From Amphiscolops sp. MND2022 (taxonomy: Eukaryota): 64,000 bases of DNA. Position numbers and translations under genes: made by a program. Positions 27,835-64,000 of this stretch are shown here, one piece after another. The first letter of the stretch is position 1. The number at the start of each line of letters is the position of its first letter. Where the stretch lies: NCBI GenBank assembly GCA_964187785.1, contig OZ076417.1, positions 22,878,001-22,942,000 on the forward strand. Reading direction: 5' to 3'. A model generated the notes under the pieces. That model ran no database searches. It was given only the letters and a program-made list of their open reading frames with translations, and had not been told where the DNA came from.

Positions 27835-27884
27835 CAATATCTTCAAAAGGTGCTTTAAAATCAGTCCACCTTTTCTTGTTGTAG

Positions 27885-29482
27885 GCCGTTGCCGACTGTA
27901 ACGTGGAGCTCAAGCGGATACCTTCTTTATGCGCAGAACTTGAGACTCACTGGCCGTCCATTCGGGACTACATAACTAAAACAGCCCCCACACAATTGAT
28001 GCATGGAATCAAGAACAATGTAATCATTTTCGAATTTATTCTAGGACTTTATTTTGTAGGGCACATTCGACCGTCGTTTCGTTAAGACAAATCAGTATCT
28101 TCTTTAGATTTGCGTCATAAGTTTATCGTTTCCTTTTCAGCCGCAGAGTCTGGAATAGACTATTATAATGGACGACTTCTTCACAATCAAGCTCAAATTC
28201 CTCTCCCTCCTTGTTGAGGATTGAAAGTTGCTTTTTTATACACTTTAAGATTTTATTGATTCTTATCTCCTCTGAAGGCCCATTTCGGCTTTATAGCTAA
28301 GATAACTAAAGTGCCCCACGTTGTTCCAGGACAACTTTTCCAAAATTGATTTTCCTTTCACTTCACGTCATGTTTAGACGCAAAATGCATCGACCGCAGT
28401 CTGGCTATTTGACGAGACGCTACTCTCTTCATCTACGGACAGTACTGCCGATTTGTGAGAAAGCTGTGTTGTCGTGTCATTTTGCCCGAATTCATACCTG
28501 ACAAGGTTAACTGGACTGGGTTGCTTCATCTGTGCCCAGACGATCTCAGGCAGTTGTCTACCCGGAACTTTGCTAATCGAGTCAAGCTCAAAACAGATCT
28601 CGAGACAGCCTGCCGTTCCAAAGTCCGCCGCCTGGACTCCGACAAGAAAACTGGGCCGCCTAACTTGGAAGAACTAATTGCTGCTAAGAAGGAGAGTTTC
28701 CAGATGAAGCCCCCAATAACGTCGTAACGTTACTGGAATCCCTATTGCGAGCCATCCACTTCACCGCCAATATTGTCCACGGTATGGGTTGTTTCGATCC
28801 ATACGTACTACTTTCCCTACCTCTAGACCAGGTCGCCTTCTGCTTCAATGCCCTCTTTGAAAGTTTCCGGCTTCGAGGTTGGGTGACCGGGGCGTCGATG
28901 AGCGACTGCAGGGACGAGTATTTTTAGTTCGTCGATTACTTCCGTAACGCTTACTCTGGTATCAAGGGTGCACCCGGCTTCATTCCTGATGTTCTCGAGC
29001 TTTTGACTCCAACGCCAGCTCTTCGTACCCGCTCTAAACTATTTCACTTGTACCGCCTAAGTTGTAGTTGCATTACTGAGAGCCATAAAGAACTCCCCGC
29101 TTTCAACTTCCAGGATATGGATACTTCGAGTCATCATTGCCGCCTTTCAAGTGTCATATTGCATGCTCAGTCCTAGTTATCTAATTGTCCTAATGCCCCT
29201 GCAGTCTGTACATCTGAGTCTACATTAGGTAAATACAAAGAACCGAAGTTACGATTCAATTCAGGCCAGTTGTCCGGAGACGCATGGTCTCATGTGGACA
29301 CCTTCGGTCGTTCTTCATTTTTCAAAACATTGACCGCTTCTTTCAAGGGTCTCAAGGTTTCCTCTCCTGGGAGTCAGTACAGCTTCTCGAACTTCCTCTG
29401 TGTCAATCTCTGCTGGGAAGAAGCTCAATTCGTGAAAGTAGCTCTAAAGACTAAATGTACATACAGTACTTTTGTTATCTAG
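27885..29482 (+). pseudogene. ORF2 of element A: hAT-transposase-like C-terminal half, spliced; zinc-finger half deleted
   Basis: VELKRIPSLCAELETHWPSIRDYIT (cf. B LDLRSLPTLCQELIDEWKPITTYLT); TANIVHGMGCFDP (cf. B SSNIVKGLAA); RSKLFHLYRLSC (cf. D RSHLLHVFKLCC). Confidence 0.7.
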
Positions 29483-32600: not shown

Positions 32601-33960
32601 ATTAACCTTGTCAAGGTACACGCGCATAAAGCTTGAGAAGGCCAATAATGTTCTGCTGAGGCCCTGGGCATGTCTTCTATAGGCGAAGGCGCGGCTTGCA
32701 AAATTGAAAACAGTCATCTCTATGGACCTTAGGTCCGCTATTTGAAAACAGTGATATACTTGTGAATAGTCACGTTTACAGAACAGTTTCTTTTCGCCCA
32801 AATGTTGCGTGGCATCCGTTAGGGTGCTAACTGGGTGATTGTTATTTTGGTAATCATCCGATATGAGGTTGTTGATTTTCCTCAAGTCGACCAGTGGTCT
32901 TAATTTTCCATTGGGTTTTTTCTGCGCAAAGATGGTGCTGGCATACTTTGAGAATGGCAGTGTTGCAATTATACCATTATTGTGTAATAATGCCATTTCT
33001 ACCAGTATGTCTCCTTTTAAGTTGACTGGAGTTGGAAGGCCTTGTCTATAGGCGGGCAAGTCGTCCTTTGGTGTCAGTTTGACCGTGAGCTCCTCGTCAG
33101 CCCTATGTCAAACCTCTGCCTCGCAAATAGATCATGGTTTTCTACTAGCAGTTCTTCATTTTTTTAATTTCGTGTTACTGTAGTACTGAGTCCTTCCAAT
33201 CGACGTTACTGAGGAATTTGCAGTGTGATTTTTCTTCGCTCTGCATGTTTAGCTGTTCTGCCTCTTGTAGGTTACGTGATTCCTAAAGAATCCGTCGTTG
33301 AATGGGGATGTGGGCGTCTTCGTCCCCTGGGTTTTCAGGTGTTGGGCCTACTTCGTGCAGGAGATCACTAGGTTGCAACACCCCTGTTTTCATTGTAGAT
33401 TTGGTATTTGATCTCTACTATGATACTATCATTGGGTGGTTTTGTTATATCGCCCGGGTTAACTATGGGTTCCATGACGTTGGAGTATTTGTGATCAGCT
33501 GTTTTGAGTTGCCTAGAAACATGTGGAAAATTGATTATGCCTTGTCGCATGCCCAAGACTGTATAATTCCTATGGAGGAACATTAGTTTTTTAACAGGCC
33601 GGTCTTTTTTTCCATTACTATAAAGTTTTCATGGACTTCAATGTCCCCTACTTCGAATTTGAGTTCATCGGTGTTCTTTGGGGTTTCCAGTTGTCCATTT
33701 GCGACCATGATTTGGAGCGTCGGAGCGGGTCCCTCTTTGACTAGGGGCGCTAAGAGTAGTGCGTATTTTCCTGAGGTCTGCTTCTGATATTGTTCAGTAT
33801 AGTGCTCTGGTATTGGCAGTAGATAAGGCTCCTGTGTCTTTAAGGCCGTCTATGGTTACTTCCCCAAAGTCCATCGGGAAATATAGCATCCGTTGTTTGT
33901 ATTTTAGTCCGAGGTTTGTGGATAATGGTATGTATGCTGGTCTTCCTCTTTGGTTACGAG
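29651..33960 (-). pseudogene. Gypsy pol of element A (PR-RT-RNase H-IN order)
   Basis: GLKDTGA-type protease (~33850); RT PFSKYASTIFAQKKPNGKLRPLVDLRKIN...YVDG (32388-33059); RNase H; integrase QIDLL...AIDVFSRHLFAYP (30844-31224); tail RGKYNLRPN. Confidence 0.92.
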
Positions 33961-34092
33961 GAGACGTATGAAAACCGTCTCCTCGAGTAGGCCGGGTGTG
34001 GTCTGTGTCTCGTTATTAGATGCTTCTTCATCTATTTATTCCTTATTGTTCATTTGTGGATTCGGTTGCCATGAATCGATAAGGTCCTGAGA

Positions 34093-35489
34093 TCATCGAT
34101 TATTTGGAATTTCAGGGTAATCCTCATCATCAGTTGGTGGATAGTCTTCACATTTGAACTGTGAGGTTTGTTGGTCGTAAGGGGAATTGTCCCAATACGG
34201 ATCAATGCAAAAGTCAGGATCATTATATTGAGGGTTATTACCTTCGATTAATGGAAGTGGTCTGAATTGGGTGTCAAGGTTTTCAGTATAGTCAACCGAG
34301 TAGTTTATGTCCGTTTTGTCGTGATGGACAAGGTGGTATGTTTTGATATATGCTTTATCCATCTGTTGCTGCCAGACAACTGATGGTATTCCTGTCGTTT
34401 CGTATTGCGATTGATTGTAGGTGAAGTTGGCTGGGTCGGATATGACATATTGTCGTATCGACATTTGGTCTCATATTTGGAGTCGTGCCAAAACTAGTTT
34501 TTTGAATCAAGTTTCTTTGGAGTCGCTTGACCTAATGTGGACGTCGTGGATTTGTCATTTTTGGTGGAGTTTCCTTCATCCTCGGAGGCGTCTGTGGTTT
34601 TGGTGTCCTGCCTGGTCCTTTTGCGAAGAAGGTGTGCTCCTGCACCACGCCAAGATTTCTGTGCCGGATGATTAGTTTTGCTGCAAGTTAGACATTCTGG
34701 GTATGTTGGACGTTGAGGCTTTTTGCTCTTTTGGTGTCCATTTTCTTTTTTTTTTTGGACAGACTCCAATTTTGGACAGTACTTCCAGAAGTAGTCGTCA
34801 GCCTTCTTGCATTATGAGCATTGGCTATCCTTTTTGGTATCAATACCGTTAGACAGCCGATTTCGCCCCTTACAGAACGATGTCATCGGAAATCGATGAA
34901 GAAAAATCATCGGACTCTTCTAAGGCTTTGAGTTCGAGTTCTCTTTCGAGGTGTGCCACAATCTCCTCGTAGGTCCCATTTTCGAGCCTGGCCATGTTGA
35001 CCGATTTTTTGAGTTTGGGTGGCACTTTAGCATATAATAGGCTATCCATCATGCTCTTGGCGTTTTCCCGAAACACCTTCTCGGCACCCTGATTGAGTTC
35101 TTCGAGAACAACCGGTAATTTCACCGTGTTGGGATCAAAAATAAGTCTGTGCCACTTGTGTTTGCTGTTGCTTGAGATTCGGGTTTGTTTTTTCTACGGA
35201 ATTTGACCAATACGTCTTCCAATGTTTGACGGTTCATAGAATTCATATTGCGAAAAGTTTGTAGGGCACCCTTTCTGAGCAGTTAATGAAATTGGTTTAC
35301 TTTCAATTGTTCAGTCATGGCGGGCTGCGTCTTTGTCATTGTATGAAATCGATCATCAAACAATTCGAATTTCTCTGTTTTGCCATTAAAAGTTATGGGG
35401 TTCGTCGTGACTGGTCTGATTGTCACCGACTGTGGTTTATTTTGGAGATTTACCGGGACATCTGCCACTCGATTAATAAAGTGTAGCAT
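34093..35489 (-). pseudogene. Gypsy gag of element A, N-terminus deleted
   Basis: FNGKTEKFELFDDRFHTM...YAKVPPKLKKSVNMARLENGTYEEIVAHLERELE; knuckle CLTCSKTNHPAQKSW. Confidence 0.88.
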
Positions 35490-35499
35490 TAAAGTATAG

Positions 35500-35893
35500 C
35501 ATCAAAGCAAAGTAAGACCGGTTGGGCCAAGCCGCCGTATTAGTCCATGCCGATTATCAGTAAGTACACCTCAGCAACTGCAAATAAAGCAAGCAAGGCT
35601 CTGATTGGCTAATACACCGTACGCGGCTATGCTTGCTATTCTGGACAGGCAAAAATTTCAACCCGTTTCCTTTCTGCCTGTCAGTATAGCCTGTTGTCAA
35701 ATATTAATTTCACTAAATACACAAGTACAAAAAAGATAATTTACATGTATTGAAAATACCGGAAATATGAAAAATGTTTTCAAGTTTGTTAACAATTGCG
35801 AAGTTTATCAAATTGGCAATGTGCCGGGTAGGGCCGTAGATACACTTTGGTCGGTGGTGTAGAGGTTGCCATCACAGGCGGCAGCCTGCGACA
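35500..35893 (-). repeat. 5' LTR remnant of element A
   Basis: Diverged direct repeat of about 9050-9448; starts TGTCGCAGGCTGCC beside the GTATC TSD; joined to internal gag by a deletion near 35490. Confidence 0.85.
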
Positions 35894-42979: not shown

Positions 42980-45292
42980 TGTCGCGACCCGTTCCCTGTC
43001 ACAATTTCACTTGCTGTTCCGGCATCCCAGCATTCTCCCAAGGACGAGGTCACGGGCACGTTAAGTATTTTTAAACTAACTTTAAACTAACAAAGTTAAT
43101 TGACCAATTCTACTTACAGTACAGTTAAGTGTTTGACAAACGATTTTTTTTAAACAATAAACTTAGACGTACACATTACGGAACACTCTTTGGAAATAAG
43201 TTTGAACTAGTTACAACTTACGGTCCGGCGACTCTACGCGTGATTATTTTACTTCCGGTTTCGTCTTCTGAGATTTTATACTAATCTAAATAGCAAAACA
43301 TGAAGAGAGTTCTAAAAGGAAATCTCTTCTTCTTTCGACAACCTGAAAAAAAAATAATTGAAAATGGTATCCAATCCGCAATTTCAACGGAAATCCTACA
43401 ATCTAAAATATAAAGGACATACAAAGTAGTATAGTGCAGTGTTTTTCCAGTGCAAAGAATAGTTGTTAGAATTCACTTAAATTACAGTCAAGCAATTTAA
43501 GCAAACAATTACATTGTTATGGCAACGTCACTCAAATAGAAAGTAACTGGTGCTTCTTTTTTAAGGACCAATAACGTTGTCCTTTGGCCAAGATATTTGA
43601 GCTCAGTCCAATAACAACGTCGCATTTGCGGCGCCGCTCAGTTGACAGAAAGTGAATGGACGCCTACGCTCTCCGCTGTATTTCCGCCAGCTTTCGTTCA
43701 ACTATACCTAATCTTATTATGTACGGAGCGCTTACGGAGCGAATTGTAAAATTGTAACAGAAAGGAGTGAAAATCAGTGTAGAATTTTGGGATTTTCTTT
43801 TGGGAAACGGTTTTAAAAGCATTCTAGAGTTTAAGATACACATAACAAAAACTGTTAAGAAGGAGTGGGAAATCATGTTGGCAATGATGTACACTCAGAT
43901 TCGTGTTGTGCCTTTAACAAGAAAGTACGCTGATCTTACGTTGCACACTATATTTTCGGATGATGATATCACATGTTTTAGTGTTTCTGCATATTTATAT
44001 ACATTAAAAGCAACGTAAGGATTCTGTTTTCATTGTTCGGGAAGTTGTGAACTGCTTCTATCGTAAAGTGCCCAACAGATATTTTCTGTTGTTGATGTGT
44101 TACACTTTATTTTGACGCATGTAAAATTCTTAGATTATTGTATGAACTTTGGTCAAATAATGGATGAATTTGTGTTTCTTCTTGCCGGTTTCTACAATTT
44201 TGCAGTGTTTTTACATATACGTAACCGGACCTTTCAGTTCTAGCATCATTTGTTCCTTCCTGAAAAGTATTCGCTCCGTTCTGTCAACGCTATATATCAT
44301 TTTTGCTTGTCATAGTTTCGTCTTGAACATCAGAATCATTGACTTGGAAACCTTTTAGTTGATTACGCTGGCGTACTTTTGTCAATGAATATGTCAACTT
44401 GACTTTTATTTTGCCGGATTTTCGAGTTGAAACAGGGAATGAGATGGACTGAACAAAAATAATTTCAACAAGAATCACGGAATGATGACGCGACTAGGAG
44501 TTTCGATACCTGATTATTTGACGCAGGACTGAAATAATTCAAAACATTTGGGATTTTTCGTGAAGAAACCCGACTTTATGATATCTAGGAACTTTTAGGT
44601 GAGGAACAAATGATGCTACATTACGATACATATGCCGCAACGATTTTGCAAGATCTTGCTAGTTCGATTAACAGCCAATGAAAACGCGTTATTATTCTGA
44701 AATAACGCGTTTTCATTCGCTGTTAATCGAACTAGCAAGATCTTGCTAGTCCGTTGCGGCATATGTATCGTAATGTAGGAAGGTATACATAGTTAGAAGA
44801 TGACATGTAAGTGTTGTTAATCAGTTTTGTTAATCGCTTCGTTCCGTTGATTCAACGTAAATCTTTTCTTCGAAGAATTCACTCTTTGCCGAAGATTTCA
44901 ACTTTTAACTAGCATAAAATGACAACTACAAGCCAGAAAAGAAAGGCAGTAGCTGAGCTAGTTTCCGGGGAGTTCGAAACTTCAACAGTACAAAATAATC
45001 AATTTGAAAACTTGATTGCAGGTCCTAGCAAATCTCCTAGAGTATGACCTGAGAACCTGGAAGAGGTTAAAACATCTCTACGAAAGAAATAATGTTTGAT
45101 CTAGCAAAAATGTTAGCAGAAAATCTAAAAAAGCTGATGAATTTCACAGTACTAATGGCTAAAAATCATCTGCTCATCAAAATGTTCAAGACTCTGCTTC
45201 CGAAAGAGAAAACATCTCCGTAGCTCGAACGTCCACCCCTGTAAAAACAAACACGGCTACATCCAAAACTACTCCAAAGAATAGCCGAAACA
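42980..45292 (+). repeat. 5' LTR of element D (2313 bp, including a 163-bp palindromic insert)
   Basis: TG start, ends GAAACA immediately before TGGTGACAGGAGT; first ~1.1 kb repeated at 55739-56922. Confidence 0.85.
44616..44778. mobile_element. 163-bp near-perfect palindrome (MITE/foldback-like)
   Basis: Arms CTACATTACGATACATATGCCGCAACG...AACGCGTTATT and their reverse complement around a short loop; contains GCAAGATCTTGC. Confidence 0.7.
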
Positions 45293-47149: not shown

Positions 47150-50100
47150 ATTCAGTTAATCTCAACCATAGCCCCCAAGAAGAAAAGGATGCTTTTCTTA
47201 CCCATCGACTTCAACAACGTCAAAATAGACGCGTTAGTAGACTCGCTGCGTACATCAATGCCATTAGCAAAAGGGATGCCGAAACAATGAAGCACAATGC
47301 CAGTCCGTGCATCATTAATAAAGCACTGCCTCCGCCTTTCAGAGGACAACGCGCTAACGCTAACGCTGGAACAACATCTCGCAACGTACACGTTGAGATT
47401 CAAATTTGGCGACTACATGTTTGAAGAAACGTTCATCATTGTGAACCAAACCTATTTCCCAATATTCGGACTGGCGTTCCGTCGGAAACATGCCGCTATA
47501 CTTGACACAGCACAATGAACAATAGACTTCCCGAAGATCCAAATCACGATGGTACTCACGGATGAGATGCAGAAATGTAACCCAAAACCGATTACCATCA
47601 CTACGGAAAGTAAGCACACCATACCTGAACAGTCCACCCGTATCAAACACGCGTCAATACCTGTGAGCAAGGATCACCCAATAACTGGGACAAAACAGCC
47701 TCTACCACAGTTTGACGAGTGTGCGAAACCCTTTGTGACCCCTGCAATAACAACCGCCAGAGACAAAAGAGTGGCCATCAAAATCGCAAACACAACGGAT
47801 TAAATGTCCCTACGCATTAAATGCCGACATGAAACCCTGAAAAAGAAGATTTTCCTCCCAGTTGACATAGCATTGCTAAACCTACTAACAGACCATGACG
47901 ACGTCGTCATGTACATCAAAGCCCTAATGCAAGTTGAACGCCCTGAAGACAACGAAGAAAAGTTTTGGTTCCCAACCCCAGAAAACCCTGGTAAGGAGGA
48001 TGGAAATTCATATATACAAAAACGAATCCTCGAAAAACTACGCGAACTGTCTGAACTTGAAAAACTTGATCCGACTAAAAACGAAGATTCTCGAACAAAA
48101 TTCTTTTTGATGTTAAAATGGACCGACTCACTAATCACGGGGAAAGGTCGTGAGAACTTAGAAGCCCCAATTGTAGAGTTGAATGATATCTTCGCCCGAC
48201 CTAGACTCGATATCAGCATGAATACGCAATTCAAAGTCAGCCCAACACCAAAAGATGGCATACACGAAGATGATACAGGAGTGCAGAACAAGAAGTTACT
48301 ATCCAAGACTAGCACTGAAAATTAGCAAAATCAACGCACTCATTGCGGATGACTACATCAATATTAACCAACCCATCAGCACCCTCTCAGATGCCGCCCA
48401 ACACCTAGCGGCGAAAAATCTGTTCTGCAACTCGACTGCTCCCAAGCCTACTAATGCCTTCAACAGGCAGACCAATGGTCAGTAGAACTCCTTGCGTTTA
48501 ACTTTGCCAGTAGGACGTTTGGCTATCGTAGGTTAGCCCAGGGACTTAGTAGGGCCCTGTCAGCATTTTCAAGCTTCATGAGGGACTACCTGGCCTCGGT
48601 CATCAAAACAGATCAGTGTGCGCAGTACGTTGACGACATAGGAATTGCCGCAAATACCCCGGAACAACTAATCAAAAACATCAGAGCCGTCTTCAAGTGT
48701 ACCAAAACAGCTTGCCTCACACTCACAATTGAAAAATGCCATTTTGGGGTCACCCAAGTTGAATTTCTCGGCAAAAAATTTTTGGCCATCTACCGTGCCT
48801 TTCTTGAATATAGTCACATCTTATGGGAAACAACAACACCAACACTGGTCCTGACAGAGAACCGATCAATAACCAGATTTTTCCAGACAAAAACTACGCC
48901 ACCTGCACTGGGGAAAGCCTGCAACTACGTCCTCCAATTCAAGTTCCGTGTCATGCACGTAGCAGGCTCCCAGAATACAGCAGCCGATTTCCTCTCAAGA
49001 CTCGAACTAACTCCCAAAGAAAAAGTACAATTGAAATTGCGAGGCGACATCCTAACGTCACCCATCGAAGTCAACCTACATACATCGGAGTAACGTTCCT
49101 GACGAAGAACAACTTTGCTTCCTACCAGATGAGGAGGATGAATCCAAACAAGAAATATTTGCCAGGAAAGCACCTAGCAAACAACGAGCGATAGACGAAC
49201 ATGAGAAAGAAATGTCCACAAAAGTAACTGAAGTAATCAAGATACCATTCAACTCCGCAGTCTGCACATATGGCGCAATCAAAGAAAATGCAAAAATCAG
49301 AAACGAACAAGATGCGGATCCCCTCCTCAAAGCCCTAAAACTACGAATACTCCACGAAGAATATGACAAACATCTCCTCAAAACCGAACTACGCAGGAGA
49401 AATCTACTCCGCCATGAGGAAAGAATAATCATGAAAGATGGAGTACTTATGCAAAGTTATTACGGAGAAGATGGATCAGTCACCCACAACCAGGTGATAA
49501 TCCCGAAACACCTACTCCCTGAACTTCTGTCTACATTACACGGAAAAACGAATAAAAACCGGGAATAACGAAAATGATACAAGAATGCAGAGCAAAATAT
49601 TATTTCCCGGGCCTAGCACGGAAAATCGGAGCTTGGGTACAGAACTGCCCTGACTGTATTGCCAACAAGAGAATTGACGCAAGACAAATACGTCCCAAAA
49701 TGCTGAGCAATACTGAATTTACAATGGGACCGGAAGACTGTCTGGAAGTAGACATACTACCAAATCTACCTTCCTGAAACGGATACCAACACATCATCAC
49801 AAAGATGGATGTCTTTTCACGCTATCTCTTCGCATACGCAACCCCAGATATGACTGCAAAACTGTCGCATGATGCATCATAGACGTAATGACAAGACACT
49901 GCTATCTACCAACAGTTATTTCGACCAATAAAGGATCACGATTCAGATCAGAAGTGGTCAACCCGATAGCGCAGACACTCGAAATACGGATAAGCCACGC
50001 ATCAACTAAACATGCTCAAACAATCGGCATCCTAGAAAAAACCCGTGCTTCTTTACAATTTTCACCGAAAATATCAACGAGAGAGCGACGTTCGATGTGG

Positions 50101-50801: not shown

Positions 50802-53480
50802 ATCTTTTCTTTATCCGATGCACAAAGTCAAGATCATCATCGTTCTTAGTGCCCTTTGGCTTGGAACTACTGGCTTTAGAACCGCTGGCCTTGGAGCTTT
50901 GACCTTCCGCCTTCGATGATTTAGGCTTCTTTCTGCTTTTCTCAGTTATACAATTCGACTCCTCAGACCCGCTGCTTTGCCTCGCCTATCTTGCGCTCTG
51001 CTCACTACGAGACGGCCGATTATGTTTATTGCACTCAACGTAATGCTTCTCGTAGTCCTTACATCGCTGCAGCGAAAGCCGAACACACAAATCTCTCTGT
51101 TTCGACAAGGAACTATACACAGGCCCAACAAAATTCCCCACAGATTGATCTCACCACTCACAAAGAAGACTCCCGATTGATCCACGGCAACTCGAACAGC
51201 ATCCAGCGTCTGGGCAGTGACAAAGGACGTATGAATATACACTGGCCTTAATACGAACGACTGTATCATACGTATACAGTTCTGGAGTGCCTCCTCACGC
51301 AAAGAACTACCATCCAAATTGATCTTCACAGAAGGATAAACGATCTTAGGAGTCTCAACTGCAAGGCAACAGAGCTTGAACACGTGCAACAAATGACTCC
51401 GTGATTGGAAGCTGAAATCTTGAATCAAGTAGTCTACATTGTTTTGAATGTTGCAAGCGGACTGACCGGAGCTACACTGCAATCCTCGCCTTTTATCACA
51501 TAGCTCCCAAACTCATCCTTAGCGCGTCCTGATTCATCAGCAGTTAACGAATTACACACTTTCAACAGACGGCACAGATCCGCAAAGTGACCGAATTTTC
51601 TATTGTCATCACCTTCAAATAAAATCTCTGGACAGAAGCTGTACAAACAACGTGACACTCCGGAAGTCACATTGGCGCTTCCAACAATTATCACAATCAG
51701 CCTATCAATAAACTGGCGAGACCGTACAGGGAATTCACTCGTCTTCTTCGTCATCAATGTTTTGCCAAAGTCATCGTTCACCAGGAATCCTCGATAATCA
51801 CCACGGGAAAATCAGCGACTGACTCGACAGACATATACTTGTCCCATTCATGGATGCCTGGGAGACATCCTGTGACCCGAGTCTTCATCAACAAGCAATA
51901 CACGAAATTGCACAGCTCACCGTGTGAATGAAAACTGTAATCAGTCCGATCTACCAGCAACTTCGTGAAACTGTTGTAGACTAAAACACAATGAAGACTT
52001 CACAAATAACTCATTTACAGAAAAGGAAACGAATAGACAACAAAACAGAAACAGATATAACAAATGCGGAAGCACAATCAAAGCCAAATATAACACAGTC
52101 AACAGAGGACACAAACTGATCTACTCACACGTATTGAGTATCAATTGCAAAAGCCCAAATCGATACGTAAGCATGTCATCGGCAATGATGTTCCAATCAG
52201 CCCCTTTCAAATGAAACAACGGAAAAGCACATCCTAATAATCAGTAAGCAACACACCGCCAGCGCAACGACAGCTCTACTAATTGTGTCGGCAGTGTCTT
52301 TTGCAGGAGGCAGTCCCGTACAACGGATGTATGGTCTTATAGATGGCTAGACATCAATCACGTCACCGAGCAAGCTCCGTAGATCGCCAAAATCCACGAT
52401 CCCCTTCTGGATACAACGTCGTTGAGCAACTTTATCTTCTGTCCACCCTTCGTGTAGAGCGCCATCTAAATCGCCATCAAACTTCTGCGTAACAATAAAT
52501 TGTCGAGAATTATCTCGACGATCGTTCAACACACGCAGCTATAGAGAACTACAACCACGTATGGCGACTGGCAACAACTGATCCTCCATACAGCACACCC
52601 TTTTAACACAAGGGACCAATTCAACATTAGGAAAAATCTGATCCAATGGCTGACTATCGATACATATCTTCTTTAAATGCTCATCATCACAATAAACGAC
52701 GTAACAATACTCGACGAAGCCTGTTCGCTCAAACTCAAGACTGTACTTTCGTGACACAGAAATGGAGCCCAGGACCAGACGTAGCACTCGCGGAGCAAGG
52801 CCCTGACAGAGAAATGACTAAACCAAACAAGTAAATAGCACGATCCCAAAAATCAGAAAAAAAACATGACAACAATCACGCTCTCAAACAGAAGACCAAT
52901 ATAACAACAATCAACAAAAACTACACGACTACGCTAACCACAGTTTCAGAACGGCCCAATTTACTTGAAACTCGGGCTGTCGTGCCGCCAACGACGAAGT
53001 AAAGTGCGCCCAGAGATGACGCAGCAAAAGGAAATCGCCCCCTCGGCGAAACAGCCAACAAAATGCTGGAAACCTGAAAGTCATGAATGGCACCATTGAT
53101 TTCAAGTCCTGGAAAAACTTCCCCCAAGTCTTCAAATACCCCCCCAAGACTTTCGGAAAGCTGTTATGTCCGGAAAGCTGATTCCGTCAGTGTTATGGGT
53201 TCTAGCAGCTTATTTCACAGAGGCAGATCCATGTGTACTCTGTACGTCACATCACGACGCCAATGTCCCATTGACACGAAATGACGCACAATCTCTGATA
53301 CGCCGTGAGCTTTAATCGACACGTCACGCTTACACACGCGACAAAAGAAATACTCATCAGATCCACACTTTGCACCAGTGACAAAATCCACAAATGCGGA
53401 TTCTCGGACAGCATCCGTCGATTGAGAAGATTACGTTTGCTATTTTTTCGTCTCTTCTCTTTGAAAATCAAACGCTACTT
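50802..53480 (-). pseudogene. ORF2 of D: zinc finger plus hAT-transposase-like body, antisense to pol
   Basis: My translation of 53240-53400: FFCRVCKRDVSIKAHGVSEIVRHFVSMGHWRRD (cf. B VWCHMCKKNFSIKSKGPFEILRHHRTEKHLRRD); LYSFCPEILFE...RAKDEFGSYV and RSHLLHVFKLCC...LQNCIRMIQSF match A's ORF2. Confidence 0.8.
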
Positions 53481-55117: not shown

Positions 55118-55833
55118 ATGGACAATTACTCTTTCGTAATTGACATCTCTTCCGATGAAGAGAACAGTAGATATAGTACGCCTATTAAAACGCTGCCTTT
55201 AAACATGGTGGTATAGTTAAACTTGAGCGATTCTTCCGCGGAAGTCTGGAGAGTCAGTGAAGCCGAACTTAATTCATCTTCAACATCTGTTTCAATGTTT
55301 GAGTCCGAAGCCTCTCCGCGCAAATTAGGAGTGGTTGCGTCTCCTGAAATGACAACACCTAATGAGAAGGGCGAGACGTTCTTGGTAGAAAGGCACGAGG
55401 AAAAAGATTCTACGTCTAGCTACTTCGAAGAACCAGATTCGCCCCGAGCAATGCCGCCCCTACAACCTGCACCCTCTCTGAAGGACATAACAACCTTGCT
55501 TCCTACGTGCCGCCTACGAAAATAAATAAATTAAACGATCTATCAGATGACGAGCCGTCGATTGCAGAAATGGAAGAAGTCTGGGCCTCAACCTAAAAGA
55601 TTTGTCAAACAACACACACAGGACGTGGTAACAGCTTCACCTCCACGAAAGTACAGAGGCTACGAAATCAGTCCGTAACAGTACTCAAAGAGATTTCTCA
55701 TTGCTCTGGCCTGCCAGCGTTTCGTGCGAGAGGGTCCCTGTCGCGACCCGCTCGCGGTCGCAGTTTCACTTGCTGTTCCGACATCCCAGCATTCGCCCAA
55801 GGACGAGGTCACAGGCACGTTAAGTATTTTTAA
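55118..55833 (+). pseudogene. ORF X of D (MDNYSFVIDISSDEE...), final frame reads into the 3' LTR
   Basis: SIM-like VIDISSDEE; acidic/Ser-rich; the last frame GSLSRPA crosses the TGTCGC LTR start in the same codon phase as VSQAA in A and B; internal stops. Confidence 0.7.
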
Positions 55834-56922
55834 ACAAATTTTAAACTAACAAAGATAATTAACCAATTCTACTTACAGTACAGTTAAGTGTTTGACCTAC
55901 GACTTTTCTGAACAATAAACTTGCGTACACATTACGGAACACTCTTTAGAAATAATTTTATAATAGTCAAATCAAAACTTCCGGTCCGGTGACTCTACGC
56001 GTGATCACTTTACTTCCGGTTTCGTCTTCTGAAAATTAATACTGATCTAAATAGCGAAACATGAACAGAGTTCTAAAAGGAAATCTCTTCTTCTTTTGAC
56101 AACATGAAAATTATTATTGAAAATGGTATCCAATCCAAAATCCCTACGAAAATCATACAATCTAAACTGAAAAGGACATACAAATTAGTATAGTGGAGTG
56201 TTTTCCAGTGGAAAGAATAGTTGTTAGATTCACTTAAATTACAGTCAAGCAATTTAAGCAAACAATTACAACGTTATGGTAACGTCACTCAAATAAGTTA
56301 GTAACTGGTGTTTCTATTTTGACGGACCAATAACGTTGTCGTTTGCCAAGATAAGTGAGCTCAGTCCAATAATAACGTCGCCTTTGCAACGCCGCTCAGT
56401 TGAGAAAAAAATGAATGGACGCCTTCGATCTCCGCCGTATTTCCGTCAGCCTTCGTTCAACTATACCTAATCTTAAAACGTACGGAGCGCTTGCGGAGCA
56501 AATTGTAAAATTGTAAAGTTATACCTGATCTTAATACGTACGGAGCGCTTACGGAGCGAATTGTAATGTTGTAAGAGAAAGGAGTGAACATCAGTGTAGA
56601 ATTTCAGGAATTTCTCTTGGAAAACGGTACTGAAAGCATTCGAAAGTTTAAGATACACATAACAAAAACTCTACTGTAAAGAAGGATTAGGAAATCATGT
56701 TGACAATCATGTACATTCAGATTCGTTTTGTGCCTTTAATAAGAAAGTACGCTGATCTTACGTTGCAAACTATCTTCTCTGATGATGACATCACATGTTT
56801 TATTGTTTCTGCATATCTAAATTCCATAAAAGCAACGTAAGGTTTCATTTTTTTATTTTTCGGGATGTTGCGAACTACCTTTATTATAAAGTTCCCGTGA
56901 GATACTTTCTGTTGTTGATGTG
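55739..56922 (+). repeat. 3' LTR of D, truncated by insertion of B after ...GTTGATGTG
   Basis: Aligns with 42980-~44099; homology stops exactly where B's terminal TGTCGTAA starts (56923). Confidence 0.9.
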
Positions 56923-57514
56923 TGTCGTAAGCACGGGAGTTAGTGCTTTTGAATCCGTCTTTGGAACGGTCGTTAGCCTGTTTATTCTTAGAATTGTTCC
57001 TAGGTTCTAAGTTTTGCAGTACTTCAGAATATCCTTCCGGTCTCTCGTCCGGAACGTTCCATCCCTCTTTGGTCAATTGTCCCGATCCGGCCATAACTGC
57101 ATTTTGGATTTGAGGCAAAATTTGGCTACTAATTGCCTCATTTATGGCCCTTTGAATCTGAACACTGACGCTATTCATCATTTCATCCATCTCTCGAGAT
57201 ATACGTGAATTTAACTCACTCGACAATCTATTGATCTCAACGCTTGAACACTCCCTGATCGAATTATGGCCTAATTCGGTATTTGGACTTGGTCCATCAT
57301 TTCTCGGATTCTGGAATCTATTTTCATTTTCATCTTCAAATTCATCCCCGAACAAGCTTTCCGGTCTACCGACCTGATTACTATTCACACTTTCATTTCT
57401 CTCATTTCTTTCAAAATGGTTCTCACCTAACATAATGTCCAGATTTTCAATATCTGATAACATCTCGAGTCCTCTAGACTTTCTCGCTTTCTTTTGCTTT
57501 CTAGTGGTAGGCAT
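56717..57514 (-). CDS. Gag N-terminus encoded in B's 3' LTR (~197 aa), read through into flanking D-LTR DNA (265-aa chimeric ORF)
   Basis: MPTTRKQKKARKSRGLEMLSDIENLDIMLG...RISREMDEMMNSVSVQIQRAINEAISSQILPQIQ...SRAYD, where the LTR ends; open frame. Confidence 0.75.
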   Translation of the reverse strand: MPTTRKQKKARKSRGLEMLSDIENLDIMLGENHFERNERNESVNSNQVGRPESLFGDEFEDENENRFQNPRNDGPSPNTELGHNSIRECSSVEINRLSSELNSRISREMDEMMNSVSVQIQRAINEAISSQILPQIQNAVMAGSGQLTKEGWNVPDERPEGYSEVLQNLEPRNNSKNKQANDRSKDGFKSTNSRAYDTHQQQKVSHGNFIIKVVRNIPKNKKMKPYVAFMEFRYAETIKHVMSSSEKIVCNVRSAYFLIKGTKRI

Positions 57515-58790
57515 TAAGACAGAACCGGGTTGAATAGTTCAATTATTAAAACCGGAAAACTGACAAAAGTCGTTGTGTTATTTCAATCTTTATCAAAGTG
57601 CGGGTATGAGATTAATAATCTTTTTACAGAAATATGGCTATATATACTCGTAAAAAGGATGACACTCACATTCCACAAATTCTTTGATCAAGAAATCATC
57701 ACATGTCTATGGCCTTAACAGGTCATGTGACAGGTATTATTATGGCATTGAGTTGGGTATTCAACACTTCAAAGCGGATACTTTAGGGTGGTGTCCCAAT
57801 TGGGAAAATTCCTAGTTTCAGGGTGGTCCTTAGGAATTCGACATCAAAAGAATGATGATTAACGGGGCACACAAGCAGCACCTTCAAGTGTCATGTTTAT
57901 AAACATCATCAACATTACCTTGTCAGCAAATACCAATGTCTATTAAAGGAATGCAAAAGGCATCTCTTCGGAATGCACATGCGGCACGTGTCACCACGCG
58001 CTTATTATTCAACGTAAGGGGAAGCAACTTTAAATAATACATGTCTAATCTATTTAAACATCACTGCATCATTAAATAAGAGCATAAAAGGGCCGAAATC
58101 GGCCAAATCCTGATTAATGGTACAATACTAGGGGGAGGAAGGGTAAAAGACCTTATTCGGCCTTTGATCAGCATCTAGTTTATTTGGTCCATTTGGGGTG
58201 CGTTGGTACTATTTTAATATTAAAACACCTTTGAAATGATCCCCAACTAATATGGTTAATTATAAGGTACAGATAATACAGCATCACTCATTGCATCAAG
58301 ACGGCCTAAACCGGCCATTTGACCAAGGTACAAAACAATTCGTGGACATTAAGTTAATTGGCCGTATTCGGCCGCTACCAAATCAAAGCTATACTGCACT
58401 TGTGAATTGGAACGCTGTGATTGGTTGAGGGAATGAGCTCAAGTGACGTTTTTGGATTATCGCTGAGCGTCACTTGAACTCGTTTCCTATACCGCTTTAC
58501 AGTTGCTTATACAAGTATTGCTTTCCGATTCAACTGACTTACATTTCAACTGCACTTTCGCAAAGTAACTTAATTTGGACATCTCTAAATTGTACAAACT
58601 TTAACAGACTAATTTGAACATCCAGTATAAATAACCAAATAAAATAAATATAAACGAAATACATGACGTAAACAGTTTCCAAAGTTTTAGCAGTTTTACT
58701 CTTAAAAGGTCGGCAGCGTTCCGGGTATGACTTCTTGGTCATTGTTTGTTGTCGTAATCATAGTGCCGTCACAGGCGGCAGCCTGCGACA
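56923..58790 (-). repeat. 3' LTR of B (1868 bp)
   Basis: First 22 nt identical to the TSD-defined start of A's 5' LTR; end defined by the break in D's LTR; TATATATAG about 125 bp upstream of the gag ATG. Confidence 0.8.
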
Positions 58791-59484
58791 CTGCGGGTGC
58801 AAGGAAAAGAAACGAACCTGCGTTCAATCCGTTTTCATAGGCTTCTCTCCTCAGCTTTGTTATGAATTCCGGCTCGTCTCCCGGTGTAGATCTGTCCATG
58901 TACCAGTCTACTCGTTGTTTCTTGATCGCATCTACTGAGCGGCCGCAGACCATGCATCCGGTATAACGTGTTTCGCTGACGTTTTCGTACGGCCTCGTGT
59001 TTTGGATGTGGTATGAAGCCCTGAATCCAGAATCGGCCACTACTAGCGGGGTATTCACAGACGGTCCTCTCTCATGAGGGGGCGGTGACAAAGGTGACTC
59101 CATGACAGGAAGTAGGGTTTTGCATAGCTCTATCCGAGATTTCCCTATCTTCTTTGGGGGAGCATAACACATTTCTTTATCGAAATATTTGCGGTCCAAC
59201 TTCGGGGTCACGTCTGCCTGCATCTGCTTGGAGCTCGGACCAGCTTCTATATTTTCTTCTTCTTCGGGCAAATCTACAGTCATAATGCGGCCCCCTATTA
59301 ACATGGGGCTGGAGACTACTTCTCTCTCGATCCTGGCTACTAGTTGTTCAGTATCAGTGGAACAGTCGGTTTCCCAGTCTGAGGCTTCACTCTCACTACT
59401 AGATATGTAGATGACAGATTCGTTGGATTCATCAGAATCATAGTCTAAGTCGAATAACTTTCTCGCCAGATTGTACTTGCTCAT
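58702..59484 (-). CDS. ORF X of B, intact 260 aa, unknown function (acidic SIM-like N-terminus, CxxC)
   Basis: Open ORF; VIYISSSESE, GCMVCGRS, AVSQAAACDG; homologous to 9363-10196. Confidence 0.8.
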   Translation of the reverse strand: MSKYNLARKLFDLDYDSDESNESVIYISSSESEASDWETDCSTDTEQLVARIEREVVSSPMLIGGRIMTVDLPEEEENIEAGPSSKQMQADVTPKLDRKYFDKEMCYAPPKKIGKSRIELCKTLLPVMESPLSPPPHERGPSVNTPLVVADSGFRASYHIQNTRPYENVSETRYTGCMVCGRSVDAIKKQRVDWYMDRSTPGDEPEFITKLRREAYENGLNAGSFLFLAPAVSQAAACDGTMITTTNNDQEVIPGTLPTF

Positions 59485-60511
59485 TATGAGTTTTTTAGCT
59501 ATCTTGAAGCTTGAGGAGGCAACTAATTAGAGTCAAAGTTTGAGATAGAATGAATCCAACAAATTTGAGAATTTAGCCGACTCGGGCCTTTTCCCGGCAA
59601 TTCGTCTTCGGCGGTTGAGTCTTCGGTAAATTGTCCTGATCCGACATAAACATTCCTGAATGGAATTCCATAATTAGGTGGCCGCCTTTGATATACTGCT
59701 GTTTACCCGTCATCAATACCATCACTTGAAGAGGTGTGAACGACGCTTGAGCTGTTAACGTCAACTCTCTCCATTTCAAGTGGGTAATTAACGGGTCGCT
59801 TGAAAGCTATTAACGACACGCGCCGCTAAATTCTTTCAACATGGCTTCAACCAATCAGAGTTAAGCTCCGATAAAATGAAAAATTAAGTAATAAAATGGC
59901 GAAAATGATAAATTGAAATAATTCAAAATGGCGGAAATAACAATTTGAGTAACTATAATAACAGAAGTCCCAATTAGGATAACAAACGAAATGGAACAAG
60001 ATGATAAACCGAAATAGGGTAAACGGCCGCAGTCGGCCAATAATTCCATAAGTTGTAAATAATGAAGTAATCTTTGCACATTTCGCTGGCAGACTCCATG
60101 TACAGAATAAATATGTAAATAATCCCATAATATTAGTCTGGTAATAATCTTCAGCCACGAACTCCAACTCTTCAATTCCTTATTTTGAATTCCAATTCAA
60201 TTCCTTTTATTTTAAATTGCATTTCTCCGTTCATATTCATCTTCGATCTTCTTTTATCCAATTCCATACTTATCAATTGTTCAACCACTCGTCTGTGTTT
60301 CGGCTACAATATTGATCCTCTTTCCCCGGATTCATCCAAACCCGTCTCTTTCTCATCGCTAAGTTTGGCTCTGCCCCTTGACCGATTCATCCAATTGGGA
60401 GAGTAATCAAGAACGTCGCTTCAGCAGCAGGATGTCTTCCAATACAGGTGGGTTTTCTATTTATTTGAACTAAATTCTAACTTGATCAGAGTTAGTTTTG
60501 TTCACTAAGTG

Positions 60512-60578
60512 CTTCCTGTTTCCAATGTTGAACACGTAACCACATGTTCCGTTCAAATTTCTAAGTCACTTCCGGAAG
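60512..60578 (+). promoter_or_regulatory. Conserved motif pair upstream of ORF1 in B (CTTCCTGTTTC; TCACTTCCGGAAG)
   Basis: Shared with 26558-26618; lies just before the ATG at 60596. Confidence 0.65.
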
Positions 60579-60595
60579 ATTTCAAACGCGGTAAA

Positions 60596-61816
60596 ATGGA
60601 TTTCTTTCAAGGAAGCTCACCGCCAAATTTCATCTCTTTTTGTTTAGAGAATTATCCACCTGAAGAGGAAACGTCCTCAGTTGATCCCCCTCAATTACTG
60701 CCCCCTACAACTGAAAATGCTGCTCAGGAAACTTCCGTGGCTGCTAATGCTCTTTTCTCCCCTCAGAGTATTACCAGTGAAGTCGATGTCAACTCCTACG
60801 CTGACGCTGTGGTCCAACGCATGGAAACTCAGCAGTTTGCAAGCCAAGAAAACCAGGCTATGGGAGAAAAGGACAGGGAGTTAGAATCTACAGAAATTCC
60901 TGGAGGACAAACGACCCAGACAGATCCGATCCCTAGAGGTACCAGTACCCCAATTCCCATCGAAGAGGCAAGCGATCCACACTTGAATCTGACAGCCTTA
61001 GAGTCCGCGCTAGTAATTGCTACCACTTCCAACTCGCAATATCCTGAGCTGTTGACAGCGACAAAAGACGACGGAAATGACCTGTCAAGGACCGCCCTCA
61101 ATTCTGAGGAAGATAATGCATCTTCTGTTTATGAAGTACCTGCTCTACCCAATAACGAGCCTAAAGTGCGTTTCCTGGCCGATCTAAGTGAAGGAGAGAA
61201 AACTTCGGAGGAGACCAGCAGCTTCGTGAGACCATCATTGTACGGACACATTCCTGGCCTTAGCGAAAGTGAAGCGAATGCAGGGGACGAATCCGGCATT
61301 AGTACTCCACTCCCTGAGGACCTCATTGCCTCCACTTCCAGAGGACCTGATGACCAGCTGCCCGAATTGTCAGGGAGATCACGTGCTATTTTGAAGACTT
61401 ACTTCCTAGAAGAAAAGGCCTTTAATTTACCTCGAGGTAATCCCACAGTGGCTTTCACGGAACCACAAATTTATCATTTGTTGCGGGTCTTGACAGATGA
61501 GACCCTAAGGATGTCCCATACTAACATGGAACAGATGATTTTGGACGCCGTGAGAGGTAAACCGACAGCACTACCCTCGCGAACTGAAAGTTTCCGTTCA
61601 AGAGCTCGAGCTTCAACTCCTTTCAGACCAGCGGACAGTGATTCGAGTGATACAGAAGTTGAGCGATTTACATCCGGAGAGTCAGACGACCAGGATACGC
61701 AATGCCGAACTAACACGGGAGATTCTTCCTATTCTGGGGAGAGTGACAGTGCAGGGGAAATGGCTCTGATTACTGCTACGTACAAGCCGTACACAACAAA
61801 ACCGCCCACTGTCTGA
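60596..61816 (+). CDS. ORF1 of B, intact (~406 aa from MDFFQ), acidic/disordered with a conserved helical core
   Basis: Open frame 60509-61816; core homologous to A ORF1. Confidence 0.75.
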   Translation: MDFFQGSSPPNFISFCLENYPPEEETSSVDPPQLLPPTTENAAQETSVAANALFSPQSITSEVDVNSYADAVVQRMETQQFASQENQAMGEKDRELESTEIPGGQTTQTDPIPRGTSTPIPIEEASDPHLNLTALESALVIATTSNSQYPELLTATKDDGNDLSRTALNSEEDNASSVYEVPALPNNEPKVRFLADLSEGEKTSEETSSFVRPSLYGHIPGLSESEANAGDESGISTPLPEDLIASTSRGPDDQLPELSGRSRAILKTYFLEEKAFNLPRGNPTVAFTEPQIYHLLRVLTDETLRMSHTNMEQMILDAVRGKPTALPSRTESFRSRARASTPFRPADSDSSDTEVERFTSGESDDQDTQCRTNTGDSSYSGESDSAGEMALITATYKPYTTKPPTV

Positions 61817-61853
61817 GCACGTTACTCCTTTCATAAGTGGGGAACAGAGAGGA

Positions 61854-64000
61854 TTGGATACCGATCTCAGCAGTCAAGATGCCACCCTCTCTGAAGTCAG
61901 GGAGCAAACTCTGAACAGCAAGTCGAAACGCGCTTCCCGGGATAAGAAAATCCCCAGGCCCAAGAGACAGATCCAGCGAGGGGTGCCCATGCGCGAGGAA
62001 TTCTTCGCCAAGATAGGGTGGACCAGGTCCTTCATTTCTGGACCCGCTGACCCGATCCACAATCCACATATGGTCTGGTGCCATATGTGCAAGAAGAACT
62101 TCTCGATTAAGTCCAAGGGTCCTTTCGAGATTCTTAGGCATCATCGGACCGAAAAACACTTGCGACGTGATCAGCGGTGGAGGTACGAGCACCTCAGGAG
62201 TGTCGATCCAGTGAGTGGAGTAATTCAACATCGTGTTAGAGGCCGTAATGGCAAGATCCTGAATAAAATGGAGCTGGCCAAGGAAATGCCAAAGTTCATC
62301 CATACGGAATTGGTTGACATCGGAGAGCGCTTTCCGTTTTATGATGATTTCATCCGAGGCCGAAACCCCCTTTAGTGACACCTGAGTCGAGAGCCCGGAC
62401 GCAATTGTGCCTGATCGGGGAGTACATCCCTACACACGGAGACTTGTCAGTCCTTAGGAGCATGTGGGCAAAAATCAGTTCATTTACCGACTACCAGGCT
62501 GCACTCTGCGACTTCGACTGGGGAGAAGAGAGAATAACTGTAAGTATTCCTTACACATATCTTTTGATTGATGATTTACTCTCCATTTTGAGTACCGTTT
62601 TCCATTTCAGGCCATCTTCCAACATTTTTTCAATTGCGCTCTAAGGGACATAGGCGAACATGTGGCTTCAGAACAGTGCTTCGGTCTGGAGTTCGAAGAC
62701 AGTGGCTCCAGTAGATTCATGTCCCTGCGGTTTTGGAAAGGCAACGAACTTTGCAGAGTGACAGTATGCAGGAGTGGTTTACCATCTTCCGATCTAACAG
62801 GAGAACTGGGATCTTTAGCCCGATTGCTTTCAGTCGTTTCTACCAAAGCGGACATAGTTGCTTGTTCTGGATGTCCGGCCGGCCTGCTTCAAGCCATAGA
62901 TGGGATGCCGACTACTATCAGAGCTGTGCAAAGCTGTTTCCGTTTCACCCAGTTGGATCTGCCTCACCTAATGCACAAGATAAGCTACAGCGTATTTGGG
63001 CATATTGATTTCTTTTCTGTTCTCAAAGGCCTTGTTATCTCTTTGGGCAGTTCGCTCCGAGAGGAATGGGTACAGAGGAGTCCTGAACTTGTTAGGGTGA
63101 GTATCTTTCAGTTCTATGGTGTGACTCTTATACGGGGAGGGTTTGAAGTTCCGCCAACTAAGTGGGTATAATTTCTGAATTTTCCTTTCTAAGCCATTTC
63201 CAGTTGTAAACTGGACCTCCGGTCTCTCCCCACTCTCTGCCAGGAACTCATAGACGAGTGGAAGCCAATCACGACCTACTTAACATCCCACGTTCCCCAG
63301 CAACAAGGACAGGGAGTCAGGACAAGGGTGAGTTGCATCGTCTGTCCTATTATTGGCGAGATTCGTAATCCCCATGTCTGATATGGTGAAATGGTTAAAC
63401 TAATGCAGTAACCATATTTGTGTTTTTGTTCCAGGTTCAGAGTTTCGAGTGGGCTCTCATCTGCGATGAGTTTTTCCCTGTCAAACTGGAGTTCTTCTAT
63501 CATCTGATTAGTGATTGTTAGTACTCCATAATGGGTTCCTTAGGTTTTTCTTAGGACCAGAATAGGCCACCGTCTTGTTTCAGACAATTCCAGTTTCATC
63601 GTCAATCAGCAGCAACGACGTGATTCCTCCTTTTATCTTTGTGGGGAGGTTTCCCGCTACATTTACAAATTATGTTTTCGCTGCTACAATTCTGATACGG
63701 TTCCCCTTGAGAACTCATGGCTCCATCTGCTGGGATTCCAAGTCACTGAAGGAACTTTCATGCCTGTGGAGGAGTTCCTGACCCGGCTCAAGATGACAAA
63801 TAAGGTCTCTAAGGCTTGCAAGCTGAAGTCAGAAGGTGTCCACTCTGGGAAGAAGGTAGACAAGGCCCTTGTTCAGAAGACCGCTTCTACCATACGGAGT
63901 GAGTTTGTCTACGATGCCCAGACGTATATACAGTACCTGATAGGCGAAGTCCTTCGGCAAGCGGGGCTAAGCTCAAACATTGTTAAGGGGCTCGCAGCCT
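61854..64000 (+). CDS. ORF2 of B: C2H2/BED-like zinc finger plus hAT-transposase-like fold lacking recognisable catalytic residues; spliced, with some frameshifts; runs off the window
   Basis: WCHMCKKNFSIKSKGPFEILRHHRTEKH; introns GTAAGT 62540..CAG 62610 and GTGAGT ~63098..AAG 63194; FGLEFEDS...SLRFW, PHLMH, ELIDEWKPITTYL and NIVKGLAA resemble hAT blocks. Confidence 0.7.

Follow-up and report, generated by a model that had tools for sequence, protein, structure and literature searches.

Retrotransposons with long terminal repeats (LTRs) are usually seen as gag-pol machines, with or without env, and conserved accessory genes have been documented mainly in plants, plus single animal cases such as Cer1. 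In the plant Tat/Retand group of Ty3/Gypsy elements, antisense additional open reading frames (aORFs) lie between pol and the 3' LTR (gene23 of maize Grande, rice RIRE2, ORF4 of Silene Retand); Retand ORF4 carries a Transposase_28/TRP28 domain, Grande gene23 has its own promoter upstream and a nuclear product, and a DNA-binding, regulatory role is suspected for the aORFs (PMC7264820, PMC11963269). Here we analyze a 64,000-nucleotide stretch of the genome of Amphiscolops sp. MND2022 (GenBank assembly GCA_964187785.1, contig OZ076417.1, positions 22,878,001 to 22,942,000 of the forward strand), called the window throughout, in which three LTR elements, A, B and D, appear to bear related extra genes downstream of pol: a large antisense gene and a second gene in the element sense, named ORF X. 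We give about an even chance to the reading that B, A and D represent a diversified clade of ~16-kb Ty3/Gypsy elements equipped with a two-gene, self-acting regulatory module. LTR retrotransposons with accessory or antisense ORFs are already known, and the present combination is a variant of them.

Like the plant Tat/Retand elements, those described here have a long region between pol and the 3' LTR, with a conserved antisense protein-coding gene in most copies. Unlike the plant aORFs, the gene belongs to an animal element and has no sequence relation to them (no exon or family member matches Transposase_28, PF04195); it has four predicted introns, whereas the word 'intron' is not mentioned in the plant review; and it encodes a far longer protein (1,270-1,308 amino acids) with a BED-like finger, next to a second, sense gene that overlaps U3. 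Like Cer1 of C. elegans, also Ty3/Gypsy, these are animal Gypsy elements encoding an extra protein besides gag-pol; the Cer1 protein CERV is reported to be lineage-specific, nuclear, phosphorylated and needed for element expression (PMC10309623). CERV is translated from a spliced mRNA of sense orientation and functions in the export of RNA, and Cer1 is described without an antisense protein gene (PMC10309623).

The antisense protein appears to resemble hAT transposases and their derivatives (Hermes; ZBED, FAM200 and GTF2IRD2-type) in its N-terminal CxxC...HxxxxH finger followed by a large domain with an all-helical C-terminal part; unlike the hAT group, its gene resides inside a retrotransposon, without terminal inverted repeats. 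Complex retroviruses, too, have antisense accessory genes (discussed in PMC7264820). HBZ of human T-cell leukemia virus type 1 (HTLV-1) is a small bZIP protein, an antisense-encoded nuclear regulator transcribed from the 3' LTR. The gene described here may be comparable to HBZ in that it is antisense-encoded within a retroelement and its product is proposed to be a nuclear regulator independent of the 5' LTR sense promoter, but it differs in its 1,270-1,308-residue zinc-finger product, its candidate internal promoter region and its four introns. Full-text literature searching found no animal Gypsy element with an antisense intron-bearing or hAT-like gene, and a preliminary description of the locus, made from the sequence alone, knew of no described animal Gypsy with such a module. 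An animal clade with thousands of copies, in which two accessory genes are under purifying selection as strong as that on ordinary host genes and one of them is large, intron-bearing and possibly of DNA-transposon origin, is a tractable system in which to ask about the role of accessory proteins in retrotransposons, be it self-activation, anti-silencing or targeting.

Element B is a young Ty3/Gypsy retrotransposon

Element B occupies the minus strand from 56923 to ~73134 (~16 kb) and runs ~9 kb past the end of the window, and the adjoining 20 kb of the contig were included in the analysis. The interval in which the preliminary description had placed its candidate system, 58702-64000, covers just the 3' third of the element. 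The 3' LTR (56923-58793, minus strand, termini TGTCG...CGACA) and the 5' LTR (71264-73134, minus strand, outside the window) form a pair of 1871 bp with 99.6% identity, and a 5-bp target duplication, CACAT in element orientation, lies at 56918-56922. The pol gene is one open ORF of 1737 amino acids, along which Pfam finds gag-asp_proteas (227-315), RVT_1 (626-791), RT_RNaseH (883-981), Integrase_H2C2 (1179-1234) and rve (1255-1350). This order of protease, reverse transcriptase (RT), RNase H and integrase within an open pol places B in Ty3/Gypsy, and B is a young element of that group.

A candidate primer-binding site (PBS), TGGTGACAGGAG, directly adjoins the 5' LTR. The gag protein matches DUF1759 above the Pfam cut-off (26.6 bits) and zf-CCHC just below it (19.9 bits against 20.8). 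As the preliminary description proposed, gag begins inside the LTR: its ATG lies ~197 codons within the repeat and the frame passes through the PBS into gag proper. The copy of this gag-head frame in B's own 5' LTR contains a stop codon. The copy in the 3' LTR (56923-57514, minus strand, ATG at 57512-57514) runs out into the LTR of element D, giving a 265-amino-acid ORF at 56717-57514. There is no polypurine tract directly upstream of B's 3' LTR, and the nearest purine-rich stretch is ~30 nt off.

ORF X, 260 codons and open, lies at 58702-59484 on the minus strand, in the element sense, with its last ~30 codons within U3. The antisense gene begins at 60596 on the plus strand, so that the two start codons diverge from a region of 1.1 kb (59485-60595).

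ORF1 and ORF2 are one antisense gene, predicted to be spliced

The preliminary description divided the accessory region into three genes: ORF X, an open antisense ORF1 and a dead, hAT-like zinc-finger ORF2. Comparison of B with 10 further genomic copies, chosen by an ORF X anchor, shows this count to be wrong: there are two genes, and ORF1 and ORF2 are parts of a single antisense gene with five coding exons and four predicted GT-AG introns. In L014, L016-18, L020 and L021, exon 1 is a single ORF of 653-692 codons, and the complete spliced frame is open, with 1270 amino acids in L014, 1282 in L021 and 1308 in L016-18. Conserved coding blocks alternate with unalignable stretches that are bounded by GT(A/G/T)AGT and by a polypyrimidine tract plus AG, and the splice sites keep the same codon positions between lineages that are saturated at synonymous sites. 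The introns of L014 measure 71, 96, 107 and 67 nt.

In B, exon 1 runs from its ATG over 60596-62539 (plus strand, like all of the gene) and comprises ORF1 and the first part of ORF2, including the BED-like C2H2 zinc finger (CxxC...HxxxxH, 62079-62159), after which comes the most conserved block of the protein. It is followed by intron 1 (62540-62610, 71 nt, GTAAGT...CAG), exon 2 (62611-63096, 162 codons in every copy), intron 2 (63097-63192), exon 3 (63193-63327, 45 codons, homologous to positions 27885-28022 in element A), intron 3 (63328-63434), exon 4 (63435-63516, 82 nt), intron 4 (63517-63583, phase 1) and exon 5 (63584-64000 and on past the end of the window to a stop at ~64746), which encodes a predicted all-helical domain whose fold weakly resembles the C-terminal portion of hAT transposases. 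The protein has an acidic, serine-rich N-terminal half, then a lysine-rich stretch, the BED-like C2H2 finger and ~700 conserved residues.

Intron 3 is exactly absent in the L015-L018 lineage (local positions 6474-6691), where exons 3 and 4 are fused into 217 nt (135 + 82). Exact losses of this kind arise when a gene recombines with the reverse transcript of its spliced mRNA, and we take this one as indirect evidence that intron 3 is spliced in vivo. Since the gene is antisense, its introns stay in the genomic RNA of the element and would survive retrotransposition; the family illustrates in nature how antisense-strand introns can pass through retrotransposition, one of them having been lost precisely. 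A three-exon model was considered and rejected: two further conserved exons (135 and 82 nt) lie within its 'intron 2', and the acceptor it assumed included a G that belongs to the intron. Between L016 and L015 that former 'intron 2' is 92% identical though synonymous sites differ by 27%, partly due to the two hidden exons. The four sequencing runs listed for the region behave like DNA, giving short collapsed-repeat contigs and no GT-AG joints.

The state of the gene in B differs from that in the family. Relative to L014, which is 99.4% identical, B has lost 2 bp near 61788 and 1 bp near 62366; these frameshifts explain the apparent boundary between ORF1 and ORF2, which corresponds to the 2-bp deletion. 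A third lesion is the intron-2 acceptor, AA instead of AG (63191-63192). As judged from these sequences, the antisense gene is dead in B and alive in the family. Of the two ORFs of B described earlier as open, ORF X is indeed so, whereas ORF1 is a segment of the longer, broken gene.

The two genes are abundant, linked to Gypsy pol and under purifying selection

Copies were sought across the 1.07-Gb genome. ORF X gave 8006 first-look candidates, from which at least 147 genomic copies were scored at 73-100% identity, nearly all without stops. The last antisense exon gave 7744 first-look candidates, and most of its 108 reported matches (61-100% identity) are open. The element copy number is in the thousands, and genome annotators should be warned that the exons of the antisense gene and ORF X will be taken by the thousand for host 'genes' with no known function.

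The two genes keep their place beside pol. At all 11 ORF X-anchored loci the antisense gene and pol are where expected, and the layout of B, with pol and the antisense gene facing each other and ORF X reading into the LTR, recurs in 10 of the 10 further copies; in two hit lists, nine pairs of ORF X and last-exon matches lie ~5 kb apart on opposite strands. The three distant ENA loci (3/3) keep the arrangement beside RVT/rve genes, two at 23-24% identity and one with a 56%-identical ORF X. The linkage to Gypsy pol therefore held at every locus examined, down to 23% identity. The preliminary description had seen the layout in A, D and B together; it stands for B, the 10 genomic copies and the three ENA loci, but ORF X of D is only a motif remnant. 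A profile search with the antisense gene returned 663 clusters at 50% identity, and its homologues in a set of 5.8 billion proteins are all unnamed ENA ORFs. In the databases searched, no match to an already described family, named or annotated by Pfam, was found.

These data bear on the possibility that the antisense gene is a passenger that does nothing for the element, be it a hAT DNA transposon nested there or a host gene picked up by transduction. The weak hAT-like fold signals described below and the many genuine hATs of this genome are in its favor. A passenger, however, is hard to reconcile with a position and orientation that are constant in every lineage down to 23% identity, with purifying selection on the gene, with the lack of any flanking inverted-repeat pair, of a recognizable catalytic motif (no SER-type motif is present by eye) and of a Pfam hAT domain, and with the finding that none of the loci examined has a copy of the gene away from a Gypsy context. 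This explanation is largely refuted already, and we consider it extremely improbable. Chance ORFs were likewise rejected as an explanation, as was a nested DNA transposon.

Neither gene evolves neutrally. The ratio of nonsynonymous to synonymous substitution rates (dN/dS) of ORF X is 0.05-0.09 between lineages; that of the antisense gene, between L016 and L015, is 0.146 in exon 1, 0.10 in exon 2 and 0.124 in the last exon, and in comparisons of deep lineages its proportion of nonsynonymous differences is 0.2-0.4 against ~0.8 for synonymous ones. From these sequence comparisons, both accessory genes are under strong purifying selection. The low dN/dS, the frames that are open in divergent lineages and the conserved intron phases further show that selection acts on the antisense protein and not on transcription alone. 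This matters for the view that the antisense transcript itself limits or regulates the element by way of double-stranded RNA and small RNAs, the long ORF being secondary. The stop codon of pol lies ~210 bp beyond that of the antisense gene on the other strand, so the two genes converge and their 3' ends may overlap, and regulatory antisense transcripts have been discussed for plant and insect retrotransposons (PMC7264820). Against it stand the dN/dS of 0.10-0.15 in the exons, the open frames of 1,270-1,308 amino acids and the conserved intron phases, and we hold it to be quite improbable.

Sharp changes of identity occur along the 10-kb loci. L021 and L023 share 91-97% identity in the LTR and ORF X, 82-92% in pol and 48-73% in the antisense gene, and the pairs B/L016 and L016/L015 give other combinations. 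The LTR, ORF X, the antisense gene and pol have different histories, which indicates that modules were exchanged by recombination between lineages, and the antisense gene behaves as a swappable cassette.

Elements A and D carry diverged versions of the module

Blastn self-comparison and ORF maps show the window to be a pile of LTR elements, and two of these, as judged from protein-level homology, carry diverged versions of B's accessory module. Element A, on the minus strand, is marked by a repeat pair found by blastn self-comparison (9042-9447 and 35487-35892) and has its pol at 29844-34470 (minus strand; RT 32391-33107, integrase 30847-31224). Its ORF X homologue is frameshifted (9366-10200, minus strand, with a motif like that of B's ORF X at 10117-10140), and its antisense-gene homologue is degenerate (27346-29368, plus strand, opposite A's pol), with exon 1 represented at 27346-27615, exon 3 at 27885-28022 and the last exon at 28413-29368. 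Element D, on the plus strand, has LTRs at 42980-44100 and 55739-56922 and RT at 48455-49090. Its antisense-gene homologue, also degenerate, lies opposite pol on the minus strand (51252-53343), with the zinc finger at 53239-53343 and the last exon at 51252-51808. The ORF X hidden Markov model has no match in D; the remnant that can be detected is the motif VIDISSDEE at 55139-55162 (plus strand), ~600 bp ahead of D's 3' LTR.

Protein-level conservation between elements whose DNA cannot be aligned, as put forward in the preliminary description, is evident: B and A match in ORF X (E 1e-15) and in the last antisense exon (E 1e-35 to 1e-44), and B and D match in the zinc finger and the last exon (up to E 1e-10).

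ORF X carries a candidate SUMO-interacting motif

The motif shared by the three elements, VIYISSSESE in B (59389-59412, minus strand, core IY-SS), satisfies, as a motif match, the pattern of a SUMO-interacting motif (SIM), which is a V/I-x-V/I-V/I core followed by a run of Ser, Asp or Glu. In the consensus core SVIYISS the I-Y-S-S residues are identical in 22 of 22 homologues and an acidic, serine-rich run follows, resembling phospho-regulated SIMs such as that of PML. Translation of the window in all six frames yields the pattern exactly three times, once where ORF X lies in each of B, A and D, and related forms are present in A, D and a JGI metagenome contig. Conservation in ORF X extends to the motif CMxCG and to several Cys and His positions, and its C-terminal domain is Cys/His-rich.

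Relatives of ORF X in the protein database form 216 clusters, all from ENA and all unnamed. The JGI contig, Ga0126343_10227676 (L046; 1.3 kb), encodes a 26%-identical ORF X with the SIM-like motif, CxxCG and the peptide VSQAAACDG, which indicates that ORF X is not confined to this assembly; it comes from an environmental or host-associated metagenome and is too short to show neighboring genes. In B, VSQAAACDG is encoded by a 27-nt stretch, AGTGTCGCAGGCTGCCGCCTGTGAYGG (58766-58792, minus strand), that spans the U3 terminus. This stretch is DNA-invariant in all lineages, synonymous sites included, with the exception of one C/T site. The first ~25 nt of the LTR are likewise invariant in L016, L020-L022, L024, L045 and L046, whose DNA cannot otherwise be aligned, and make up a near-palindrome, GTCGCAGGCTGC/CGCCTGTGAC.

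About 45 nt upstream of the ATG of ORF X there is a conserved acceptor-like site, YAG|T(T/C)GC, with pyrimidines ahead. It is compatible with a spliced subgenomic mRNA and hence with a function of the module in replication steps other than transcription, where ORF X would be an RNA export or expression factor like Rev or CERV and the finger protein would bring the pre-integration complex to chromatin by tethering or targeting. A DNA-binding protein derived from a transposase could guide integration, and in Cer1, also an animal Ty3/Gypsy element, CERV is reported to be made from a spliced mRNA and to be required for export of the genomic RNA (PMC10309623). A splice donor was not identified, however, and the promoter-like internal region and the palindromes in U3, described below, fit transcriptional control at least as well. 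We regard such a replication role as rather unlikely.

The antisense protein may derive from a hAT transposase

We lean towards a hAT origin of the antisense protein, without great assurance, and if this is true, the protein is most likely non-catalytic. The finger pattern, CxxC-x16-HH-x4-H, is conserved across the aligned lineages. The nearest neighbors in the embedding space of a protein language model are Dimer_Tnp_hAT and FAM200-GTF2IRD2-like for the last exon (0.91), and zf-BED, zf-C2H2_12 and the FAM200-ZBED5 RNase-like family for the C-terminus of exon 1 (0.86), both below the confidence range of the tool. For the last exon, 24 close sequences gave an AlphaFold model too poor for use (pLDDT 43), whereas one from 44 diverse sequences reached pLDDT 77 and is all helical. 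With this model, Foldseek against AFDB clusters retrieved five 'HAT C-terminal dimerisation' proteins (E 1e-4 to 1e-1, TM up to 0.58), the top shape match is a rotifer cluster with Dimer_Tnp_hAT (TM 0.45), and a further hint is an alignment with Hermes transposase, whose score is discussed below. The hAT-like character claimed in the preliminary description is thus seen at the level of fold and of embedding neighbors, but Pfam yields no match to the protein (neither zf-BED, Dimer_Tnp_hAT (PF05699) nor RNase-H-like), profile comparison with genuine hATs of this genome yields none either, and the gene is not flanked by terminal inverted repeats. A scan of JGI metagenomes with zinc-finger patterns gave no match.

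Conserved control regions suggest self-regulation

The 1.1-kb region between the two divergent start codons is a candidate bidirectional promoter. Long blocks of it stay conserved between lineages whose synonymous sites have reached saturation, and among its motifs are an inverted CCAAT box (CTGATTGGCTG) and CGCCATTTT, the latter twice. These motifs are similar to the sites of NF-Y and YY1, often present in bidirectional promoters that lack a TATA box. The palindrome GGCC-N6-GGCC is present three times in U3, at 58091, 58303 and 58360 (58091-58373), at positions conserved between lineages, and once in the inter-gene region (60025-60038); the window holds seven, against 0.16 expected. The positions are kept in ten lineages and in L024: mostly two or three lie in U3 (four in L024), and the region between the accessory genes and the 3' end of pol usually have one each. 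They are candidate sites for a dimeric factor, which may be the element's own finger protein or a host protein. Taken together, the inter-gene region and the palindromes suggest self-regulation.

The self-acting regulatory module would then work as follows. Two genes arranged head to head around the conserved 1.1-kb region, between pol and the 3' LTR, would both be expressed from this internal region, which resembles a CCAAT-type bidirectional promoter. The zinc-finger protein would be a nuclear DNA-binding factor, non-catalytic and probably transposase-derived, that acts on the element's own control regions, its candidate sites being the GGCC-N6-GGCC palindromes of U3, the internal region and the 3' end of pol. 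ORF X would serve as an adaptor to nuclear machinery that depends on SUMO, and the two proteins together would promote transcription of the element or shield it from silencing. The BED-like finger, the SIM-like motif of ORF X and the conservation of GGCC-N6-GGCC in U3 and the inter-gene region are in keeping with a regulatory or anti-silencing role of this kind. A dedicated counter-silencing system, in which the finger binds palindromes in U3 and the internal promoter, the SIM-bearing partner disarms SUMO-dependent heterochromatin and the exchange of cassettes is the trace of an arms race with the host, seems unlikely to us.

Several points weigh against the regulatory module. Expression, promoter use and splicing are read from the sequence, the precise intron loss apart, and three activities are putative: recognition of the GGCC palindromes by the finger, binding of SUMO by ORF X, and any effect on silencing. 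The palindromes adjoin CCAAT boxes and could be sites of host factors. The invariance of the VSQAAACDG stretch at the DNA level makes it a cis constraint of the LTR end and not evidence for the protein. As for the transposase ancestry, Pfam gives nothing meaningful on any exon, on ORF X or on the 68 (24 + 44) family members; in hhalign, the exon-1 and last-exon families have no significant match to eight genuine hATs of the same genome, the sole alignment being finger to finger (E 0.1, probability 0.6%) with the catalytic region unaligned. A sequence profile search of PDB with the antisense protein and Foldseek searches of PDB and Swiss-Prot models with the last-exon model gave no match. The last-exon model aligns with residues 367-609 of Hermes transposase at Z 5.2 over 178 residues, which is below what helical proteins reach by chance.

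Other features of the window

Element A is split by an inserted BEL/Pao-type element (10832-26148) with an integrase tail of the DUF5641 type (11674-12336). BEL/Pao elements are not known outside animals, and this insertion points to an animal host. The LTRs of the insertion (10832-11722 and 25250-26148) are 87% identical, and an internal 3.7-kb segment is present in three tandem copies (13959-25140) with 91-100% identity. GGCC palindromes of A lie beyond the 406-bp repeat found by blastn, and its 3' LTR is therefore probably longer than the surviving 5' copy. The LTRs of A and B have a 15-mer in common, AGGAAACGAGTTCAA, beside short hairpins, and CCAAT boxes follow in both (in A, window 8752-8948 and the region of 9220-9240).

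Just inside D, after its 5' LTR, is a 163-bp palindrome (44616-44778) that is 91% self-complementary. A fragment of a D-type LTR (L013, 79633-80016), 86% identical to 55739-56130, lies ~6.5 kb past B and is followed by RT- and integrase-like ORFs. The first part of the window (1-6000), with 32-36% G+C, a GC skew of +0.29 to +0.47 and a run of N at 1465-1664, is probably satellite or simple-repeat DNA.

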